A stretch of DNA of 63,673 bases, the filler included, from Reticulomyxa filosa (lineage: Eukaryota > Protista > Foraminifera), in the NCBI GenBank assembly GCA_000512085.1. It is 16 parts of 16 records of this genome, joined end to end, with 100 filler letters (N's around TTAATTAATTAA, not from the genome) between each part and the next. Parts side by side here need not be neighbours in the genome. Positions count along the whole stretch, not along the records: positions 1 to 13,651 come from ASPP01027167.1; 15 more parts are not named here. One strand, written 5' to 3'. A program made the position numbers and the translations under genes. Shown here one piece after another: positions 1-12,994 of the stretch (its first letter is position 1; each line of letters opens with the position of its first letter). The notes beneath the pieces were generated by a model, which saw nothing but the letters and a program-made list of their open reading frames with translations, did not search any database and was not told where the DNA came from.

Positions 1-3000
1 AAATGAAATGCAAGGGAACATTGGCCACTTTGGCCAAAAATTTGATCAGTAATGTTTTCCCACAACCTGTTTCTCCCATTAAAATAATTGGAATATTGGA
101 TTGTATTCTCAAATATATTGCAATCATTTTCAACATGTTATCGTAAGTTAACACATAATCTCGAAACTCTCCAATCTTTATATTTTCGATCATTGTTTGT
201 TCTTTTTCTAGTTCCTTTGGCATGAATTCCATTCCCCATAACTCCACTTTGATCTTTGCCCATGACGTTTCTTTTGTGCCAACAATGCGGAGCAACGACT
301 CTGTTTTTTTATCTTTTTCTGCAATTTTTGTAGATATCTTCCATATATTTTCCTGAGACACCGATTTTGCGTTGTTAGTCAGGATAGAAATTGTACCTTT
401 TCATAAAGAGATAGAGGCCATAAATTCAAAAAATGAAATTTTTTAAATTGAAAACAAATTGAACAAACCTAAATTGTTCTGATTGTCCTGATTGACCAAA
501 TATAGAAAATCTTGGGATACTTGCCATTTTTTGCATAGATAAAACTCATCCTCTCCTTCACTCTCGTTTCTGTTATACATGTTCCTTCTCTCGTACAATT
601 GACTGGAAAGATCTATTCCCATTTCAATAATAGATTTGGTGATTTCATGTTTGAAACGAAGGGGCCATTCTTGACTTTCTTTGTCTTTATTTCGTAAAAA
701 AAAATTGTCAACTAGGGGAGCAAATTGATTGAACAGATATTTGTAAAAAGCAGTTTGTTGCAAGGGAGAAGCCTGTGCAATTTTTGGACAGTTTGTTGTT
801 ATAATTTGAATCATTTCTGAAGATTTCAAATCATCATTTTTTGCATATCAGGGTCTTTGTCTCTATTGTTTTATTTGTTTGTATTAATTATGTTCAAGAT
901 AATAGTATAATCAAATTGCATTTTGTTACAAAACTTTAAATATCCAGCAAAGAATTCTTTCATCCATTTGATAGCAAATTTTGCTTCTGGACCAAATATA
1001 TATGGATTGGTTTCTTTGGACACTTTTATAATGGGAATCTTTGATAAAGAGAATACCGTATTCAATATCTTTTTGTAATCATTATCACTTCCATTCAATT
1101 TAAAAGGCATTTCAATTAAAAAAGCCATTTTTGTATTGACATGAAAACATTGTGAAGTCATCATGTTCAATGTGGTATTGATGTGTTGCAAATACAAAAG
1201 TTCAAATAAAAATGTATTCATCGAAGTTGAGACAAGAGGAGATATGTCCAAGTGATACACAATAAGATTATCAACATGATAATGGAGTTTAGAGCATTTG
1301 TTTTCAATGTCAATTAAATTATCTTGAACTTGATATTCATTTGTGCAAGGATGATATCTCCAAAGTCCTTCCATTATACATTTCCAATCAATGTTATCAC
1401 TGTTGAATGCAATACGTATGACTTGCATATTTGGATTGGTTCTTCGAATCGATTCAATGTCTTGTTCAATTTTGAAACTCTTGCCCATTCCAACTTGACT
1501 AGAGACATACAACTGCACAAATGATTTGTTGTTATGATTATTTGAGAAATTTTGTGAAACAAATGTCTGTAAGTTATCACAATATAATTGCTGAAACAAT
1601 AGATTTGGAGTTTGATCATTCATTATAATAGATTGAAATAATCGAAATGGATTCAATTTTCGAGATAACATATTATTGGGAGAATTTGATACAATAACCA
1701 ATAAATATGGTAATTTTTTTAATCTGTTCAATGCTTCATCAGTCAATAACAAAGTATGAAACAACTTGGTCACTCGCTCCAATGTTTCAAAAGGTAACAC
1801 TTCTGGCCACATTAAACAGTACAACGGAGATTGCAAAGTATCTTGTTTTTCGTAAATTCGATTGGCTGAAGTAATAGCCCGAAATAATAAACATTCAATT
1901 TCTTCTTCCATTGTATTTTCTTTGCATACCAAAATATGTTCAAATCGAGGAGTGACTCCAATATTTTTGAACAACTCCAAAACATTAAGCATTTTATGTG
2001 TATTTTGAATTATTAAATTGGGTTTGCCATATTTAAGTCCACATGAAGATACAACACAGGAATATTTCAAATTAATCCAAATATATGAAAACACTGTTCC
2101 AAATTGAGTAAATATTTTATCTTCTTCCACAGGTGCAAATTTCCATTTTTCAACAAAAGGTAAAGCGTCAGAAATATTGGAATCAATACGTTGCAAAAAT
2201 GGTAAAATGAATTTAGAGCAAAGTATTGCTCGATATTTTTGATTACAATCTACAATATCATTTAATTTTTTGGAAAGGTATCTCACTTCATTAAATGTAA
2301 AGTAATTCAATATTGGATATTCTGTTCTCAATTTTACACATTCCTTTTGCCATTCTTCAAATCTGTTCTTCCATTCACTTTGCAAATTTGTAAACACTTC
2401 CAATGGCTCTTTCACAGATAAATGCAATTTTTTTGTCTCTTGCCGTCCACCTTTCCTCCAAAACATCACTCGTAATATTTCAATTTCCTTGCATATGCCA
2501 AATTGCTTAACCAGTGGATCTACTTTTTCTTTGCAAAATCTTAACAGCACGCAATCAATGTCTTGTTCTATTTGATCAAAATTCAATTGTTCTGATCCAA
2601 TCTGCAAAACGAGCCATTCATTTCTCTGTCCTTTTTCTTCGTTGTTATCAATAACAATGGGATTGGCTCGCAACACTTGATCGCATCCGGCAAAATTCCA
2701 TTGGCCAATTTGACTCGCTTTTTCCAACAAACTAAAGCTTTTGGCAACTGGCAATAGACTCGCCTCTTCGACTAGAAAAGAGATATGATCCAGATCCTCG
2801 TCGCAGCACTTTTTGAATTTGACAGTGAAATCGTTATCACATTTGTAAATTGCTAAAATCGCTGTTGCAACTTGACTTGTCTCTTTTAAATCGGCATCCC
2901 AAATATATTCATGGATATTTTTGTTGACTGCACGTAGTGCACTTGCCAATTGCTGGAATCGGATTTCCTTGCAATTGTCCAATTTCTCTATAGTGTTTAT

Positions 3001-6000
3001 AAAATACATTTTGTTTGCAAAATATTTGTTGGTTGCCAATTGTTTGATCAGTTTTTCTTCATATTTCACAATCAAATCCAGTAATTCTACACACTCCAAA
3101 ATCCCATTTCCAAAGCAGCTTACACATTCATCATAATATTGACACAGGAGTTGGATTAAAGGCTCTTGTTTTTCAATTTCTTTGAAGATATTCTCCAATG
3201 ACTGAACGAAGAAATTCCAATTGGTATCATTTTTCATTATATTGTTTGATTCGTGATATTTTTTTAAAGCTTCGGTGGCCTTTTTCAACATTGCCCAAGG
3301 AGTCACCATTTTTTTTAATTGTTTGACCTTTTCACATTTTTCATGGATATCTTTTACCGTCATTTCCCTTTTTTGATCAGTCCAGTTTGGAAATAAGAAT
3401 TTCATTTCCAAATGCAAATCACTTATTTCAAACCATTTCAAATCTTCCATAGAGAGTAATTTATTTTCTATTGCCTGTCTCAACTCCCTCCATTTTTTAC
3501 ATACATGGTTGTATATCTTATCCATACTCGTTTCAAATGTCAGTTTCGTTTGTTCATTCATTTCTCTTCGATACTGAATCCACAACTTTTTAAAAACGCA
3601 ACTGCCCTTCATATCTACCAAATATTTCATTGCTTCTTGCAATTTTTGAAATGTATTTTGTTCATTGTGATAGTTTCGACTTGCTTCCAGGAACGACTCC
3701 AAATCCCAATTACTACAAAACTGACTGAATTCTTGTAACCGTTCAGAAAGATCATCCATAGTCATATAATCTGTTGACACCACTGTATATAACTGTTTCA
3801 AACGCACAAAATCTTTGAACTTTTTTAACACATTTAATAATGTATCCACTTTGTCTTTCCATTCGGGAAAAGATCTGCAAATAGCTTGAATGTTATGGTT
3901 ATTATCACCATATCCTAAAAATTCGCATACACAAAATGCAATTGATTCATTTTCAACCATTTCAAACAATACATTAAATGTTATTTTCATTAAGTCTTGC
4001 AATTGTTTTAATCTTCTTACTTTATTTGATTGACATTGAGTCAATGGTAACCATGGGATACACAAAAAACAATATTCCAAATGATATATTAATGACTTTG
4101 ATTTATTCTTGTCTATTTTCTCTTTTTTAATTTCCTCTTTGTTTTCTTCAATTTCTTCAATTACATTGAGATTCATTTGAACAGGAATATCTACAATCAC
4201 TTCTAATATTCTATTCAATAGCTTCCAGTCAATGAATGTCTTTTCCAAACATTTCTTCAACACCTCCAAAGATTTCTCATTCCATTTTTTGCTACTCAAA
4301 AATAGTGCTTCTTTTTGCTTTTCAATTTCGGTCAAAAATGTGATTTGGTATTCACCAGGGAGACACCAAAATTCTAAATAAGACATCAAATTCACAAGTT
4401 GTTGAGGAGAATCAATGTTTTTTCCAACCATCTTGTTGTTTATCCATTCACACAGACTTTGTGACAAAAGACTTTTCAAAGTATGTTTTTTTTCTTCTTG
4501 GATCTGATACGTAAATAGCTGCAACCATAATACAAGTTTCTCTTCAATGACAAGTCGTCTTAGCAATCTTTGAGAGGAAGCAATGACCTGTGTTTCAATA
4601 GGATTAAAATCAAATGGGCAACGTCTCCAAAGTACATTAAAAATAGCCATTAATGTATCAATATGATAGATCATGTTTGTATTTTCAATATAAAAATTCA
4701 AGGTTTGCAATACGCTTTCCCAATTTTGCCAAACGACAGTATCATACTTTAGTACAAAAGAAACAAATGAAATAAAATCTTGATTAGATTGAAGTACAAT
4801 ATCTTGAAAATTCTTTTCATTGAATATGCGCAATAATTTTTTGCAAACTTGCTCGATCTTTAACGCTCCAATATTCTGGAGTCGGTCTACAAGTTGACTC
4901 CATTTTTCAAAATGACACTGGTACAATTTACAAATGACGTCTGCACATTTCGAGTCTTGTGTTGTCCACAACCTAACCCATATCTCAGCTGTCATAAATT
5001 CTTTATTGGATAATAGCAATTCCAATATTTCTTTCGACAAAATACTATCATTTTGAGAATGCAAAATTTGCATTAAATGCACTTCTGCAAATAATATTGG
5101 ACTGATATTAAGTATGCGTCGAATTTTTACATCTGTCTCGACAATATCCATGCACCGTGAGGCCATTTGTGATACTTTTTTGATATTTTTAAAGTCAAAA
5201 TGTCTCAAAAGAGTATCATTTATTTGCACAGTATTTTTATCTGCCAAAAGATTGAAAGAAGGAATCAACATAAACTGATGAAATCCTTCTACCTTGACTC
5301 CACATAAATTACGTTTTACATCACGCAAAAACTCTCTTTTTATAATTTCAATATTGACCATTGGTGCTGTTGTTACGTATTTCACCAAATAAAACAATTC
5401 CAATGGAGACAGATACTGTCGTTGTTCTCCAAGTTGTTCACTTACAAATGTAATTTGATAAATCTTTTTTTTGATGTTGGATAAAAGTTTGAAATAATCA
5501 AATTGTACCAAAAAAAATTCATGCTTAACTGATGTAATATTTGCTTTGTCTTTAAACTGTGTATTATCTCTCGAAATAAGCTTTGAAATTGTTTAGTGGA
5601 ATTGGGGAGTTCTTTGATCATATCGTGTATAGCTTGTTGCGCAAATTGAAATGACTCTTCATCATAAATGCTTTCCACCAGATGACGAATCACAAAGGTA
5701 TCTATACATTTTTCTGCGGAACCAAATAATACTGTCGTGTATGGACAATACATTTGGCCCTTCAAGTCAACAAAATAGGCACATTTTTGAGTTTCAATCT
5801 TAATCCTTGTTTGTAAATATTGATGCTTAATGTTAATAGTTAAAGATGTATTCTTTTGTACTTGCAAGTCATGTACATACAAATATCTAAATTCATCGCT
5901 TACTAATCTCATTGGATCCTGTACTCCTAAACAAAATATACAATGTACTCTTTTTTTAGGTAGTTTTTAATTAGTAAAAACAAATACCATTTTGAAAAAT

Positions 6001-6208: not shown

Positions 6209-6523
6209 TTATTTTATTTTATTTGTATCGTTTAACTCAGGCTTCTCGGCACCCTCTTCGCGAAAATCTCCAATGTTTAGTGGTTTCAAGTCTTTTTTGA
6301 TACGAAGTTCATTTAATGCATTCAATAGTTTCACTTGTTGACCCTCGAGCAATCCTACTTCTTTGAAAATTCGACTCCATTGTTCACGCGATATGACGAC
6401 AACGGATTCCATATCATCACATTCGTAATAATCGTACAACCAATCGAGTATTCGTCCCACATACATTGGTCTCAGTATTTTCAAGAAACTTCTAATTTCT
6501 TGTTTTCCTGGATCTTCTGCCAT
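6209..6523 (-). CDS. SAM-like helical domain ORF; probably the first exon of the RNF213-like gene
   Basis: The pattern FLKILRPMYVGRILDWLYDYYECDDMESVVVISREQWSRIFKEVGLLEGQQVKLLNALNELR resembles a sterile alpha motif. It lies on the same strand about 100 nt upstream of the RNF213-like exon at 5988-6110. Joining is not proven. Confidence 0.55.
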   Translation of the reverse strand: MAEDPGKQEIRSFLKILRPMYVGRILDWLYDYYECDDMESVVVISREQWSRIFKEVGLLEGQQVKLLNALNELRIKKDLKPLNIGDFREEGAEKPELNDTNKIK

Positions 6524-7352
6524 TGCACAAGATTCACCGACGGGAGACAAGAATTTAGAGTTTATTCACTTCCTGTCTCCAACAAACCTTGCTTATCGAG
6601 TAATTTAAAAAATTGAAAGTAATTAAAGGAGATCTTTTCTTCCTCAATCTTCTTAATTCAATAATTACAAAGTGGAAATATATGCATTTTCAAGGCTTGC
6701 AAATTATTTAGAGGATTATGATGAAAAAAATCAATGAGATTTGTGTGTTCCTGTTGATTTTGGCACGCTTGCACAGTAAAACCGTCACCATAAAGAGTCT
6801 TTTAAAAAGGTTAGAATACTTTCCCTTTTTTGGTATGAATTTTCTCAGTTTAAACGGTACTTGCTTTGAGCGTTTTCTGCCTTTCAAAATGCAACTCGGT
6901 AAAGAAAATGTGTCTATTCTGTGTTTTTTTAATGATGGCAAAAAAATCTTTTCTTATTCTATGAATTAACAACAGTGTGCCAGCAAACCCAAGGTACATT
7001 AGGCTTAAAAAAGAGTTGTTCCCATCCGGAAACGCGCATCTCCAATTTTGAAAAAAATCCCCTCTGTTTGTTTGTAGGAAAAATGACTACGTATGACAAA
7101 AGGAATGAATGCAGTTGGTTTGAGGTCGGTCATTATCCTTACGAGACAAGTACACATAACTTTTTTTTTTTTTTTTGTGGTGGAAAAAAAAGAAAACAAC
7201 TGACAGTAATCTCAACCTAGCGATGATGATGGCCATAAACTTGCCAAACATGAGTTTACAAAATGAATATACATGACCATATATAGCCCACATAAATAAT
7301 AGAAATAGATGTAATCATGTGGTAAATAGACAACGTGAAGTGCGCTGGAGGA

Positions 7353-10300
7353 ATGCAAAACGAGATCACAAACGAAGCCGATAAAGCTTATGAAAAAGAA
7401 ATGAAGATATTAATTCGACTATTTGGAGACGCAGTCAGCAGAGAAGAGTTGCAACAAAAAATGGAACAGTGCAACGGAAACATTGAATCAATGATCAAAG
7501 ATCTTGTTCGAAAAGCTATTGAAAACGAGGTATATAAATGCCAACGACAATATATAAATACATATATGTATATGTACACATTATATATTTCTTAATTTTT
7601 TACTTTTTTTTAATAAAAAAAAAAAGGAGTACATTAGATACGGAGCTCAAGACAAAAGAATCGGACGATACAAAAGAGGCATATATATAAATATATATAT
7701 ATATAAATACATATACATATATATATGTATATGTATGTATACGTACATATATGTATATGTATATGAAAAGGGTTCATTTGATTTGTCTTGTTGAAATATT
7801 ATATATGTATATACTGTATCGTGTTTTTATTTGTTTGAAATAATGAGCCAGGGCCTACAAGTAATAAACAGCATGTTCAGTGGACTCAGTGTTAGTAGTG
7901 AAGGTATACAAAAAGAACCGGAAAGAGCGGAAATCGGACAAGTGAAGCCAGGTATTAACTTGCAAGGACATTGCACTAATGAGGCCTGTTTAGCGTCAAA
8001 GGCAACATTGCTAGTATGGACGAATATTGGATTTACCACCATTTCATTTAATAATTCAGAGGATGCATTTTTTCATTGTCCAAATTGCAAAAAACTGACA
8101 GTCACTTCTATCACCAAGGCGCTTTTTTATAATGCCAATCATTCCATTTGCGCAAGTGGCGATGTAATGCCTGTCAGAGATAATCATTATCGATGTTCAT
8201 ATACGATCAAGTCTGGATTGTCTTATGAATTGAAAGCGGATAAAATTAGACAGCCCGCAAAAAGCATTGAAGATTTGAGAGAAAGGAGTGAATGTGCAAT
8301 GAGCAGTGTCGAAATTACAAATTTGGTGACTGAATTGCAAAAGTATGATATCACCGTTGTGAAGCCGCCCAATTTGAAAGAAGACAAGCGATTATTGGAA
8401 AAGATTCAAATAGATTATGAAGGTGATTTTAGTCAAGTATTTGATATTGGACGATTCACTATTTTGTGTGATGATAGCACCAAAATGCAAACAGCGGTTG
8501 CAGTGATTAAAAAAGCAGAACAATTCAATCTAATTGTGTCCGAAGACAAGGATTTTTTTGAAAAGAAATCAAAGACACATTATCGATTCCATAACATTAA
8601 ATTATTTGTGCCAAAGCATAATGTATATATTGAGATGCAAGCAACATTGAAGCGATTCACAACATTGGAGGGATATTCAGTCATTGAAAATCCAAATTTG
8701 AATCATTCACTATATAAATTGGTCCGGGCATGGAAACCAAATAATCCGGAGGAGGAGACATTGAAACGAGCAAGTGATAAGGCTTTGGCTAAAATCAATG
8801 ATATAATTTGTGAGTGGATTGATGAAAAGCAAATCAAAAAAATTGTCGATCGTTACAAACCACACTCCGAAATTCGAATATTAAAGCCTGTACAATTAAA
8901 AGGAATGGCAGAGCAAATTGGTAGCATAGACGATGCTCCTTTAAAATTAACCAAATTTGTGTATGATCAACTTTGTGAATTCACTCCAAAAGGAATGAAA
9001 GGGAAGGCAATTTATGTGGTTTTATTTGACTATTTCAAAAAATATGTCATGCATGAAGCAAATCTTGCAAGCTGTGGTGATGTTGTATCCATACTGAAGA
9101 AAGCAAGAGAAAGAGAGCTAGAAGACGATGCAGAAATATTTCAAGCTCTTGAAAGCTATGTTCCATTGCAGGCGAATAATTATCCGTATGCCGATAATGA
9201 CGATAACAAGGAAAACAATTCATATGATTGCCATCATTATATGACCGATTTGCTGACAAACAAACAAAGCAGCAAAGAAGAAAAACAACAGGTAATAATA
9301 TTGCAAGGGAAATCAGGATCAGGCAAAAGTGTATTTTGTCGCTATTTAGAAGGGACATTATGGGAATCATATATGAGTGGCTCTGCAACGTCCATTCCTG
9401 TTTACATCTCATTGCCGAAATGTTATAATGAATTGGATGAAAAACAAATCATTTCTCAGGCTTTTCAAATGAAACGAATTAATAGGGAAGCAGTGGATGT
9501 TGTTCGTGAAAATATTTCCTTTGTTTTTATTTTGGATGGATTTGACGAAATATTTGACAAATATAATAAGCACAATAACAATGAAAAATACTTTTTTAAT
9601 CGTTTTCATTTAGATAAATGGAATGCAAAAATTATTGTGAGTTGTCGGAGCCATGTACTAAACGATGAAGATATTGCTCACGTTTTGACGGGTTCAAATT
9701 GCACAACAACACCAATGCTGCATTTATGGCCTTTTTCAAACGAACAAGTGCATGCATACATTGACAAGTTTGTAAAAATGAATAAAAAAAAAAATTGAAT
9801 CACAATTTGGATTGGACAATACACCAATATAAAGAAACTTTGAATAATTATCCAAATCTACACAAAATGATGGAAGAACCTTTTTTACTTCAAGTGATAT
9901 TAACAGCATTACCATCATTACTGAAACAATATCCTGTAGGAACTAAAATATCAAAATCACAAGTATATGAAGCATTCAATGAACAATGGATTGATATTCA
10001 CGTTAAAAATATTGTAAATAAATTATCAGAATTAAGGATTCAAACATATCCCAAAAAAATCAAATCGGCATTTCAGCAATATTGTCAAGATTTAGCATTT
10101 GAAATGTTTATTCAAGGAAATCAAGTTGCAACTGAAGATATTAGTGCACAATATAAAAACAATGAATTTTTGAGTAAATTAGACCCACCAAGAGACACAA
10201 AGAGCAAAAATGAAGACGACGAAAAGTCAAAAATGCAACCCGATACAAATGACACTTCGACCATACGTACAAATATTTTTAGAAATGCAATGTCAATAAA

Positions 10301-12994
10301 AAGGGAGAGTAAAACATACAAAACGAAGAAAAAAACAACAACATTTTGGATAAATCAGATTCAAAGGTAGAAAACGAAAATAAAATTTGGGATAAGTATT
10401 TTGATGGTAACAGTATTGCAAAATATGTATTGAGGAAAATTGGTAACAACAACTACCAATTCTTACACAAATCGTGTCAAGAATATTTTGCAGCACAAAA
10501 AATAATGCTTGACATCATTTCATGGAAGCCAAGTTTTAATGCAAATCTCAGCAATCAAGAATTTCAGGAACAATTTGAACTATATGTTCCCAAGTTGCTT
10601 ATCAATTGTAAATTATTAAATGAAGAATTAGAAATTATAAAATTTATTAGTGAACGAATTAATGACACAAATTCAAAATTTATCAATTTTAAATCAAGAT
10701 TGTTTCGTATTATTGATGCATCAAAAAATAATAGCAATGTTAGTATTGCAGCTGCAAATGCAATCACTATCCTTAACTCAGCTAATATTAATATGCATTA
10801 TCAAAATTGGGAAAATATTAAAATTCCGCATGCAATTTTAGATCATTCATTTCTTGAAGGAACTATTTTAAAAAATGCAAATCTTGATTATGTTAGTTTT
10901 TTCCATGCTTTCTTAAATAAGACAAATTTTACAAATGCATCAACAAATGGAGTATTTTTTGGCGAATATGCTTATTTAGAAGGAAGCTCAGTTGTAAATG
11001 GAGTGCAATTTTCACCAGATGGTTCAAAATTTGTATCTTGGTCAAGGGATGGAATTATTCGGGTATGGAGTACGTCATCAGGAAAACAAATTCAATGTTT
11101 CCAAGGACATTCAAATGACATAGAAGATGTGCACTTTTCACCAGATGGTTTAAAAATTGTGTCATGTTCAAGGAGTGATAAAACAATTAAGATATGGAAT
11201 GTACTATTAGGTCAACAAATTCAAGCATTAAAATACCACGCCGACTTGCATGGAGTGCAATTTTCTCCAGATGGTTCAAATGTCGCATCATGTTCAACTG
11301 ATAAAACAATTCAAATATGGAATTTATTATCGGGCCAGCAATTTCAGTTATTAAAAGGACATACTGCTGGTGTATCTGCAATTCAATTTTCGAGAGACGG
11401 TTCAAAGCTTGTATCATGCTCATTTGATAAAACAATCCGATTATGGAGTGTGGAGTCAGGACAAGAATTGAAAAAATTTGAAGGACACACTGATCGTATT
11501 AATAAAATTCATTTATCATCAGATGACCTTAAAATCGTGTCATGTTCAGACGACGAAACAATTAGAATATGGGATATATTATCCGGAAAACAAATTCAAG
11601 TATTACGAGGACATACGGGATGGGTAAATGCAGCATATTTTTCGCCTGATAATTCAAAAGTTGGGTCTGGCTCAGAAGACGAAACAATTAGAGTATGGGA
11701 CACATTGTCTGGAAAACAGCTCCAAGTATTACAAGGACATTCAAGTCGGATTACAGGATTGCAATTTTTTTCAAATGGCTCTAAAATTTTATCGTGCTCG
11801 AGTGATAAAACAATCCGAATGTGGGATGTAACATTAAGACAAAACGCTCAATCAATAGGAGGACATCTAAGTCATATAAAGGAAGTACAATTTTCACCGG
11901 ACAGTTCAAAAATGGTGTCATTTTCCACTAATAACTCAGTGCAATTTTGGGATGTTTTGTCAGGTAGACAAATTTTTTTATTACAGGGCTATTCGAATGG
12001 TATATGTGGAATACAATTTTCATCAGATAATTCTAAAATAGTATCATGTTCACACGACGGAACAATCCGAATATGGTCTACCTCATCCGGGAGACAATTG
12101 CAATTAATTCATTTGGATGCAAAGAATGTACAATTTTCACCTGATGATTCAAGGATTGTATCATATTCAGGTAAAAGTATTCAAATATGGGATGCGTCAT
12201 CAGGGAAACAAATACAAGTATTAAATGGACATTTAAATGATGTAATTGCTGTTCAATTTTCACCTGATGGTTCTAAACTTGCGTCTCATTCTCTTGATAA
12301 GACACTTCGAGTATGGGATATATCATCTGGGATAGAGCTTCAATCGTTTGAAGGGCAGCCGTGCTTTAAAGGCGCCATACAGTTTTCATCAGATGGATCT
12401 AAGATCTTATCTTGTACGAGCAAGGCTATTTACTTATGGGATGTATCATCTGGAAGTCAACTTCTATTGTTAAAGGGACATTCGGGCGATATAGAGGGTG
12501 TGCAATTTTCACCAAATTGTTCCAAAATTTTGTCATATTCATGGGATAAAAGTGTCCGATTGTGGGATGTTCTTTCTGGAAAACAACTCCATATTTTAAA
12601 AGAACACACTGGTTACATTACTCGAGCACAATTTTCGTCAGATGGCTCTAAAATTATTTCATGCTCGGGAGATAAAACTATTCGAATATGGGATGTATTT
12701 TCAGGACAACAAATTCAATTGTTAGAAGGACATACTGGATTTTTATATGGAATACAGCTATCACCAGATGGCTCTAAAATTGTATCATATTCAGAAGATA
12801 GAACAATCCAATTATGGGGCACTAGTAATAATAGCAAAATAGCTGATGTGACCGAGACTAATTTTGTGAAATGCATTTGGCGAGCTGGTGTTCAAAGTTT
12901 TGGCTTATCAATGAAAGACAGTATCTGGAAAGGTACAAATGATTTAACTCATCAACAGAGGTTGCTTGTGGAGCAACGTGGTGGAATACTTTGA
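7353..12994 (+). CDS. NLR-like STAND protein: CUE-like + Cys4 Zn-like domain + RelA/SpoT-like nucleotidyltransferase + NACHT + pentapeptide repeats + 15 WD40
   Basis: ORFs 7335-7595 (exon ending gag|gtatat at about 7529), 7831-9798, 9795-10370 and 10346-12994. NACHT motifs: Walker A GKSGSGKS, Walker B FVFILDGFDEI, sensor IIVSCRS, EPFLL, winged-helix FLHKSCQEYFAA and AAANAITIL. These are followed by pentapeptide repeats (ILKNANLDYVSFFHAFLNKTNFTNAS) and a WD40 array. The ORFs join through single-base frameshifts at A-runs 9784-9794 and about 10311-10314. Confidence 0.9.
7681..7765. repeat. Imperfect (TA)n microsatellite in an intron of the NLR-like gene
   Basis: atatatataaatatatat...atatgtatatg tract seen directly. 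Confidence 0.8.
8341..8740 (+). other. RelA/SpoT-like (RSH synthetase / small alarmone synthetase) nucleotidyltransferase domain inside the NLR-like gene
   Basis: Motifs appear in RSH synthetase order and plausible spacing: NLKEDKRLLEK (Syn1-like), DYEGDFSQVFDIGRFTIL (Syn2 Asp), KDFF, HYRFHNI (variant of GYRxxH), YIEMQAT (ExQ) and NHSLYKLVR (H..Y). Confidence 0.75.
10981..12822 (+). repeat. Array of 15 WD40 repeats (about 42 aa / 126 nt each)
   Basis: Repeating consensus L.GH...V..VQFSPDGSKIVSCS.DKTIRIWD..SG.Q counted 15 times in ORF 10346-12994. Confidence 0.95.

Follow-up and report, generated by a model that had tools for sequence, protein, structure and literature searches.

The 63,673-nucleotide stretch analysed here (the window, 16 parts of assembly GCA_000512085.1 joined end to end) is nuclear DNA of the freshwater foraminiferan Reticulomyxa filosa, and at 7353-12994, on the plus strand, it carries a receptor gene in which a RelA/SpoT-type synthetase stands upstream of a NACHT ATPase and WD40 repeats. 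Judging from sequence and predicted structure, we think it rather probable that this gene belongs to a family of STAND receptors resembling NOD-like receptors (NLRs) whose effector is an active nucleotide pyrophosphokinase. The family combines this architecture with the fold of RelA/SpoT homologues (RSH), conserved donor-site and catalytic residues, purifying selection, an expansion within the genome and relatives in bacteria. From N- to C-terminus the gene encodes a CUE-like domain, a cysteine-rich beta domain, the synthetase, a helical domain, the NACHT, pentapeptide repeats, 15 WD40 repeats and a conserved tail. Introns interrupt the upstream exons, and the main coding region is split over three open reading frames (ORFs; frames 1, 3 and 2) that align collinearly with paralogues. 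Each exon and each ORF piece was searched individually, unjoined.

A first-pass annotation, made from the sequence alone, had read a series of RSH motifs in the ORF at 7831-9798, and all of them are where it placed them: K183, R187, E190 and K191 (8377-8403), D205 (8443), R208 (8452), HYRFHN with Y251, R252 and N255 (8578-8595), E268 and Q270 (8632-8640), and H292 and Y295 (8704-8715). Searched in isolation, the enzyme domain (8251-8745) matches Pfam RelA_SpoT at 29.5 bits (E 1e-6; cut-off 27), as against 26.3 bits within the whole ORF, and 37/37 aligned paralogous domains match the same family. Its AlphaFold model has a predicted local distance difference test score (pLDDT) of 92, and a structure search of 48,161 chains returns RSH synthetases at each of ranks 1-11 (Z 8.9-14.1). 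In an alignment of 59 rows K183, D205 and R208 are invariant and K191, E268, Q270, H292 and Y295 nearly so, with E268 and Q270 substituted in none. The RelA/SpoT-type identity proposed by the annotation is thus borne out by Pfam score, SYNTH fold and the full RSH set of basic donor helix (K183, K191), Asp (D205), Arg (R208), ExQ (E268, Q270) and C-terminal His (H292). PADLOC and NCBIfam contain no match for the domain.

Within the RSH superfamily the domain appears to belong to the toxin-like Tas1/Apk1 branch, where it is placed by sequence, profile and structure, Tas1 being absent from the trees. A profile of the paralogues finds Tas1 as its sole match in the PDB (E 0.002), a wider profile ranks Tas1 (E 1e-22) far above enzymes of the RelP/RelQ type (3e-11 at best), and Foldseek with the predicted model ranks Tas1 first (E 5e-9). 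VIA-align also puts Tas1 first (Z 14.1 over 172 residues, root-mean-square deviation 3.3), with B. subtilis SAS2 and SAS1 tied within 1. Within the comparison set that the annotation had suggested (RelP/RelQ, Tas1, FaRel and CapRel), the kinship is nearer to Tas1/Apk1 than to housekeeping RelP/RelQ. With Tas1/Apk1, the (p)ppApp synthetase of the Pseudomonas aeruginosa type VI secretion system (PDB 6OX6), and the related EAS family (Apk2, SaEAS, VpEAS, AaEAS; PMC12691689, PMC10083569), the R. filosa enzyme shares its fold, the pattern KxxxRxxEK..DYxGD..DxxR with Arg at the usual Ser, an Asn where (p)ppGpp synthetases have His, the ExQ motif and a C-terminal HxxYE helix. Identity is only 18-19%, and the R. 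filosa acceptor loop reads THYRFHN rather than being of the GY type. R208, N255 and E268 align with R330, N370 and E382 of Apk1 (in its own numbering, which is the chain number plus 21), all three of them named active-site residues (PMC12691689). A housekeeping RelP, RelQ or Rel enzyme was considered and ruled out, since the acceptor His of GYxSxH is absent and its position is taken by N255, as in Tas1. The annotation had read HYRFHN as a possible change of substrate or loss of activity; the Asn is no sign of decay, because it is common to active enzymes (Apk1 N370, SaEAS N169).

Downstream of the enzyme, the annotation's intact NACHT and its count of exactly 15 WD40 repeats both stand. The NACHT core (9292-9774; Pfam NACHT 37.5 bits, cut-off 26.7) retains Walker A (9307-9330) and Walker B (9532-9549), and the repeats (10967-12820), which would make about two propellers and are the presumed sensor, are the least conserved region of the gene (46-56% identity to paralogues). 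That these parts are fused is settled at the level of the family, because two paralogous loci each carry the fusion in a single unbroken frame: that of L090 runs from the cysteine-rich domain through enzyme, NACHT and pentapeptide repeats into the first WD40 repeats in 1252 codons, and that of L092 covers the same run, from enzyme through first WD40 repeats, in 1091. Effector, NACHT with intact Walker motifs and sensor repeats thus lie on one polypeptide, as in STAND proteins. The copy in the window, by contrast, comprises three ORFs separated by two breaks, so that the fusion claimed by the annotation holds for the family but not as one frame for this copy. On the points at which the annotation had laid itself open (a profile or structural match, conservation of the Asp and ExQ residues, and a fusion in one frame) nothing came out against it.

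The paralogue search that it proposed yielded more than 50 copies of the same family on separate contigs of the assembly, in which the catalytic Lys, Asp, Arg, Glu and Gln are conserved; paralogues also retain the Walker A/B motifs. Of the other matches of ORF 7831-9798 in the protein collection, 51/52 are R. filosa proteins (42-81% identity). No part of the gene is better conserved than the synthetase, which has its lowest dN/dS (0.05-0.16 against six paralogous domains), compared with 0.12-0.29 for the NACHT and 0.23-0.31 for the WD40 repeats in pairwise comparison with paralogues; these figures are rough, synonymous sites being near saturation. The copies differ in build. P0035 (L093 4001-7054) encodes in one ORF a signal peptide, extracellular repeats, one transmembrane helix (residue ~428) and a coiled stretch, followed after the membrane helix by the cysteine-rich domain, an intact synthetase and helical domains, with no NACHT; its predicted topology is that of a single-pass surface receptor with the enzyme module in the cytosol. 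In P0001 (L089 814-3897) the cysteine-rich and enzyme module is duplicated in tandem, the first copy lacking several acceptor-loop and C-terminal residues and the second being intact. At L091 2042-4262 the enzyme is followed almost at once by WD40 repeats, the NACHT having been lost.

Further observations support an enzymatic effector under receptor control. The enzyme lies N-terminal to the NACHT, the position of effectors in fungal NLRs (PMC4986451). The nearest relatives outside the family include export-linked toxins of the DUF4157/extracellular contractile injection system (eCIS) and MuF kinds. Finally, the receptor gene stands head-to-head with an RNF213-like gene. RNF213 is an antibacterial AAA+ ligase in animals.

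How might such a receptor work? STAND proteins are autoinhibited by their repeats, and ligand triggers nucleotide exchange and oligomerisation. By analogy, the WD40 propellers would keep the NACHT closed until a ligand binds, most likely one from a bacterium, a symbiont or non-self cytoplasm; nucleotide exchange and oligomerisation would then release the enzyme, which, if it acts like Tas1/Apk1, would move pyrophosphate from ATP to the 3'-OH of a purine nucleotide. Local ATP or GTP would be drained and an alarmone made, and the outcome could be shutdown or death of the affected part of the syncytium, or of a bacterium, engulfed or resident, within it. R. filosa is a giant multinucleate cell that eats bacteria and has fusing pseudopods, and in such a cell a local, diffusible shut-down should be useful.

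Some observations weigh against this reading. The acceptor loop is unlike that of any characterised enzyme: across 26 copies Gly is replaced by His (26/26), Asp by Phe (23/26) and Asn by Lys (26/26), and the base-stacking Tyr is His in 21/26, although the window copy has Tyr (Y251). Nor can the product be read from kinship, because Apk1-like enzymes include adenine-specific, (p)ppGpp-only and mixed members (PMC12691689). The WD40 repeats bear no sign of positive selection, albeit in a crude, near-saturated pairwise test, and the two frame breaks deprive the window copy of one open frame from enzyme to WD40. Since the acceptor loop is fixed but divergent, the acceptor may be adenine, guanine or another; by our own split, adenine nucleotides are the foremost candidate, if at somewhat less than an even chance, with guanine nucleotides (alone or together with adenine) and an RNA end or other acceptor each rather less likely, and equally so.

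The frame breaks raise the question of whether the window copy alone is a recent pseudogene in a family that otherwise works, a scenario that we regard as a substantial minority possibility and that is compatible with an active effector at the level of the family. Break 1 (9784-9798) lies in a run of 11 A, the only A/T run of at least eight in the coding region. Break 2 (10267-10345), which is not a simple homopolymer, falls in a linker that is duplicated and varies between copies; the alignment shows it as a loss of 7 bases, and frame 2 stops lie nearby (~10280 and ~10310). It may be an intron, for GT at 10267 and AG at 10327-10328 would delimit 62 nt across it, a compensated shift in which an A-run was miscalled, or true damage to the gene. 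A GC donor upstream and the loss of the NACHT in L091 might also be held to favour decay. None of the loci fetched is unbroken end to end, but the seven frameshifts in five of them lie mostly at A/T runs, and their aligned coding stretches contain zero in-frame stops outside the break-2 linker, a pattern that fits assembly indel errors better than decay. The breaks in the window are thus probably assembly errors or an intron, and we give this copy a better than even chance of being functional. Note that the NCBI models P0054 and P0055 contain introns that bridge frameshifts; the models were therefore set aside in favour of the raw frames.

A different question is whether the enzyme kills. It might instead make a low-level nucleotide second messenger that serves surface receptors as well as cytosolic NACHT-WD40 sensors, in the manner of cAMP from receptor cyclases; P0035, a membrane receptor carrying the enzyme module without a NACHT, would suit this, as would the absence of an immunity gene beside the receptor gene in the window and a fixed, divergent acceptor loop that might reflect slower catalysis or a new product. 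We nevertheless consider signalling instead of killing unlikely, since the nearest characterised relatives are fast toxins, and more than 50 copies, variable WD40 sensors and recombined segments are typical of conflict genes; nor was a receiver or hydrolase identified, in an analysis that could not search for one. Less likely still is a domain that is non-catalytic or repurposed and serves as an integrated decoy, triggering the receptor when it binds a bacterial effector, an antitoxin or a nucleotide. Related proteins are secreted by symbiont-like bacteria, P0001 pairs a degenerate copy with an intact one in tandem, and the stacking Tyr, at which a change to Phe impairs FaRel2 (PMC11782079), is His in most copies. 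Against a decoy, all donor-site and catalytic residues are kept, no other part of the gene is so strongly constrained, and the protein has no other recognisable effector domain. Lastly, near relatives in bacteria might suggest that the contig itself comes from a co-assembled bacterial symbiont, which we hold to be extremely improbable and effectively refuted: the spliceosomal-type introns, the CUE-like first exon and the RNF213-like neighbour identify the window as host nuclear DNA, the gene encodes no signal peptide, and its paralogues occupy separate R. filosa contigs. The rhizarian host assumed by the annotation is accordingly secure.

The family probably has a history shared with bacteria. 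A profile search over 1.84 billion representatives gave 90 matches, most of them without a name and none recognisable as a fungal protein. Outside R. filosa the close group comprises three metagenomic loci. L007 (1-1403 of a JGI contig, 31% GC) encodes the CUE-like, cysteine-rich and enzyme domains in a stretch that lacks the R. filosa introns, and is probably from another foraminiferan, in which case its contig may be a transcript. L001 has 52% identity. The third is L004/L005, of which L004 is bacterial by genomic context: it encodes a signal peptide, cysteine-rich domain, enzyme (45% identity), helical domain and the beginning of a NACHT, its frame is interrupted by two stops, and it lies downstream of recA, a link that rests on one 2.5-kb contig. 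The closest matches of its RecA fragment reach only 61-63%, Bacteroidales metagenome-assembled genomes first; we presume a likeness to Amoebophilaceae-type symbionts. More distant enzymes occur in L002 (signal peptide, ankyrins, enzyme, NACHT), which adjoins an IS1634 transposase, in L003 (signal peptide, enzyme, TPR, ankyrin, NACHT), which contains stops, and in L006, beside a bacterial membrane-protein gene. As a side observation, bacterial L002, L003, L004/L005, L006 and P0130-P0133 are signal-peptide NACHT proteins with swapped N-termini (synthetase, ankyrin, TPR or, in P0133, a lipase-like stretch), several of them interrupted by stops.

In the enzyme tree a single clade (100/99) unites R. 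filosa with L007, L001 and L004, and this clade together with L002, L003 and L006 stands apart from other Apk1-like rows (100/94). A topology that groups L004 with the remaining bacterial rows is rejected (approximately unbiased test, p 0.007). A single clade of the foraminiferan copies has a support of 69/71, too low to fix the direction of transfer. In the NACHT tree R. filosa lies beside L002, L003 and similar signal-peptide proteins, with the Mycoavidus/Mortierella group apart (100/99, midpoint root). On the simplest reading, enzyme and NACHT came from intracellular bacteria and exchange continued in one or both directions; the enzyme-NACHT fusion itself was probably among what was exchanged. 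More distant matches include DUF4157/eCIS toxins, phage MuF toxins and, in other protists (Guillardia theta, for example), proteins fused to repeats; export-linked enzyme classes, including those of the DUF4157/eCIS and MuF kind, have been described (PMC12691689). Five proteins (P0096, P0103, P0104, P0108 and P0119) fuse an Apk1-like domain to TPR, C1 or DUF285 repeats, one of them in Guillardia theta and the others probably in protists, and form a wider eukaryotic set. DNA-pattern scans of GTDB genomes, JGI metagenomes and IMG/VR found no close relatives, phages gave one weak match only (a Bordetella phage), and a search with P0083 as query returned only P0083 itself.

Comparison with known systems delimits the family further. 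Unlike Tas1/Apk1, the R. filosa enzyme is eukaryotic, cytosolic and fused to NACHT-WD40 instead of an export domain; there is no PAAR or MuF export domain and no adjacent immunity gene in the window, so that it is like Tas1/Apk1 under NLR control, yet no member of Apk1/Apk2. The name Reticulomyxa was not found in the available supplement of the Apk1-like surveys, which covered bacteria. The annotation's fungal precedent is real: PMC4986451 (Dyrka et al. 2014) and PMC12258605 list RelA_SpoT-NACHT-WD40 NLRs with the same domain order, likewise uncharacterised and rare (<1% of annotations; 17/4613 Sordariales NLRs), whereas R. filosa has more than 50 copies in one genome and additional CUE-like, cysteine-rich and pentapeptide parts. 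The NACHT-pentapeptide-WD40 receptors of Mycoavidus/Glomeribacter and Mortierellomycota (PMC11291939) share the NACHT type (29-33% identity), the C-terminal layout and the sharing between host and symbiont, but none of those fetched has a synthetase domain, and the R. filosa NACHT is nearer to the separate signal-peptide-bearing metagenomic proteins than to that set. By sequence, then, its closest kin appear to be in symbiont-like bacteria and Mycoavidus/Mortierella; HET-E, to which the annotation had likened it, was outside the comparison. HET-E/HET-D (HNWD) differ in that the R. filosa protein has RelA_SpoT and no HET match, and is hence not a HET-E-type receptor. The mark of that group, near-identical WD40 repeats under concerted evolution and positive selection, may or may not apply to R. 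filosa, whose repeats are visibly divergent and have pairwise dN/dS <1. CapRel, a sensor-fused toxic small alarmone synthetase, and the FaRel2 tRNA pyrophosphokinases are sensor-controlled RSH enzymes of the same fold (CapRel Z 11.0), although the FaRel2 match is weaker (E 0.44, Z 6.2) and their sensor is a pseudo-zinc-finger, not a STAND ATPase. Kibby et al. (bioRxiv 2022.07.19.500537) list alarmone synthetases among effectors of bacterial NACHT antiphage proteins and propose NACHT transfer from intracellular bacteria to eukaryotes, with Reticulomyxa and Rhizaria unmentioned in their text; the N-terminal signal peptides of the bacterial relatives found here point to export rather than phage defence.

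What is new, then, is the Reticulomyxa family, the bacterial enzyme-NACHT modules with signal peptides and the membrane-receptor paralogue without NACHT; the fusion type is known from fungi and bacteria. Within the literature searched we found no description of the Reticulomyxa family, or of Reticulomyxa with NACHT or RelA, and no characterised NLR with an alarmone synthetase effector. Eukaryotic alarmone synthesis is established mainly for plastids. The other eukaryotic cases listed in PMC3153485 are scattered and untested, and the available parts of PMC4986451, PMC12258605 and Kibby et al. contain no experiments on such effectors in fungal NLRs or bacterial NACHTs. The 200-residue domain is intact and well folded, is strongly selected in dozens of copies and can be studied with standard assays; this makes it directly testable whether eukaryotic immune receptors signal or kill via (p)ppApp/(p)ppGpp, and the family offers a first handle on foraminiferan innate immunity or self/non-self control. 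It would also be the second case, after Mycoavidus and Mortierella, in which a host lineage and bacteria have a NACHT receptor family in common, and this time the enzyme is part of it. A bolder proposal, which we regard as doubtful, is that an exported synthetase/NACHT effector of intracellular bacteria was turned into a foraminiferan system of nucleotide-signalling immunity with more than 50 cytosolic sensors, at least one surface receptor and a novel 3'-pyrophosphorylated product. If so, many sensors would converge on one enzyme with a remodelled acceptor pocket, and the messenger would be new to the eukaryotic cytosol, in parallel to cGAS-like and TIR-derived signals.

The remaining parts of the gene are as follows. 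The first exon (7353-7529) encodes a CUE/UBA-like three-helix domain (7389-7529) present in 28 paralogues; 8/20 aligned copies match Pfam CUE (best E 2e-4), and a match to the USP25 UBA is weak. A GT donor follows directly at 7530 and opens an intron region (7530-7850; GC 0.23) with an A-run plus AG at 7615-7626, a probable small exon near 7627-7679, a second donor that is GC and an AT-dinucleotide tract. The cysteine-rich beta-sandwich domain (7927-8250; pLDDT 93), whose four conserved Cys suggest zinc binding, lies immediately N-terminal to the enzyme in every case. It falls in no Pfam family and matches nothing in the PDB clearly (best Z 6.5). Its matches in the Atlas (TM 0.68-0.74) are proteins of eukaryotes with fused ubiquitin, RING or ADP-ribosyltransferase domains, and this widespread, so far undescribed eukaryotic domain is a candidate adaptor. 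The helical domain between enzyme and NACHT (8746-9150; 44-70% identity to paralogues, 28-29% to L001 and L004) accompanies the enzyme in all close relatives. After the NACHT come a helical/winged-helix region (9795-10270; 50-67% identity to paralogues), a second helical domain with pentapeptide repeats (10385-10964; 58-71% identity, PF00805 being matched on paralogue P0019) and, beyond the WD40 repeats, a C-terminal tail with stop codon (12821-12994) whose ending is common to P0067, P0060, L088, L089 and L091.

At 9810-10110 synonymous distance to L088/L089 drops to 0.37-0.43, from 1.0-2.4 in the flanks. This low distance just after the NACHT core looks like the trace of a recent recombination or gene conversion event, by which effector and sensor halves could be reshuffled. 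The gene head-to-head with the receptor is large (871-5511 on the minus strand, with upstream pieces at 5442-5912 and 6209-6550); its C-terminal part matches RNF213/mysterin structures only (E 1.4e-4), and it is apparently frameshifted or prematurely ended near 871-829.

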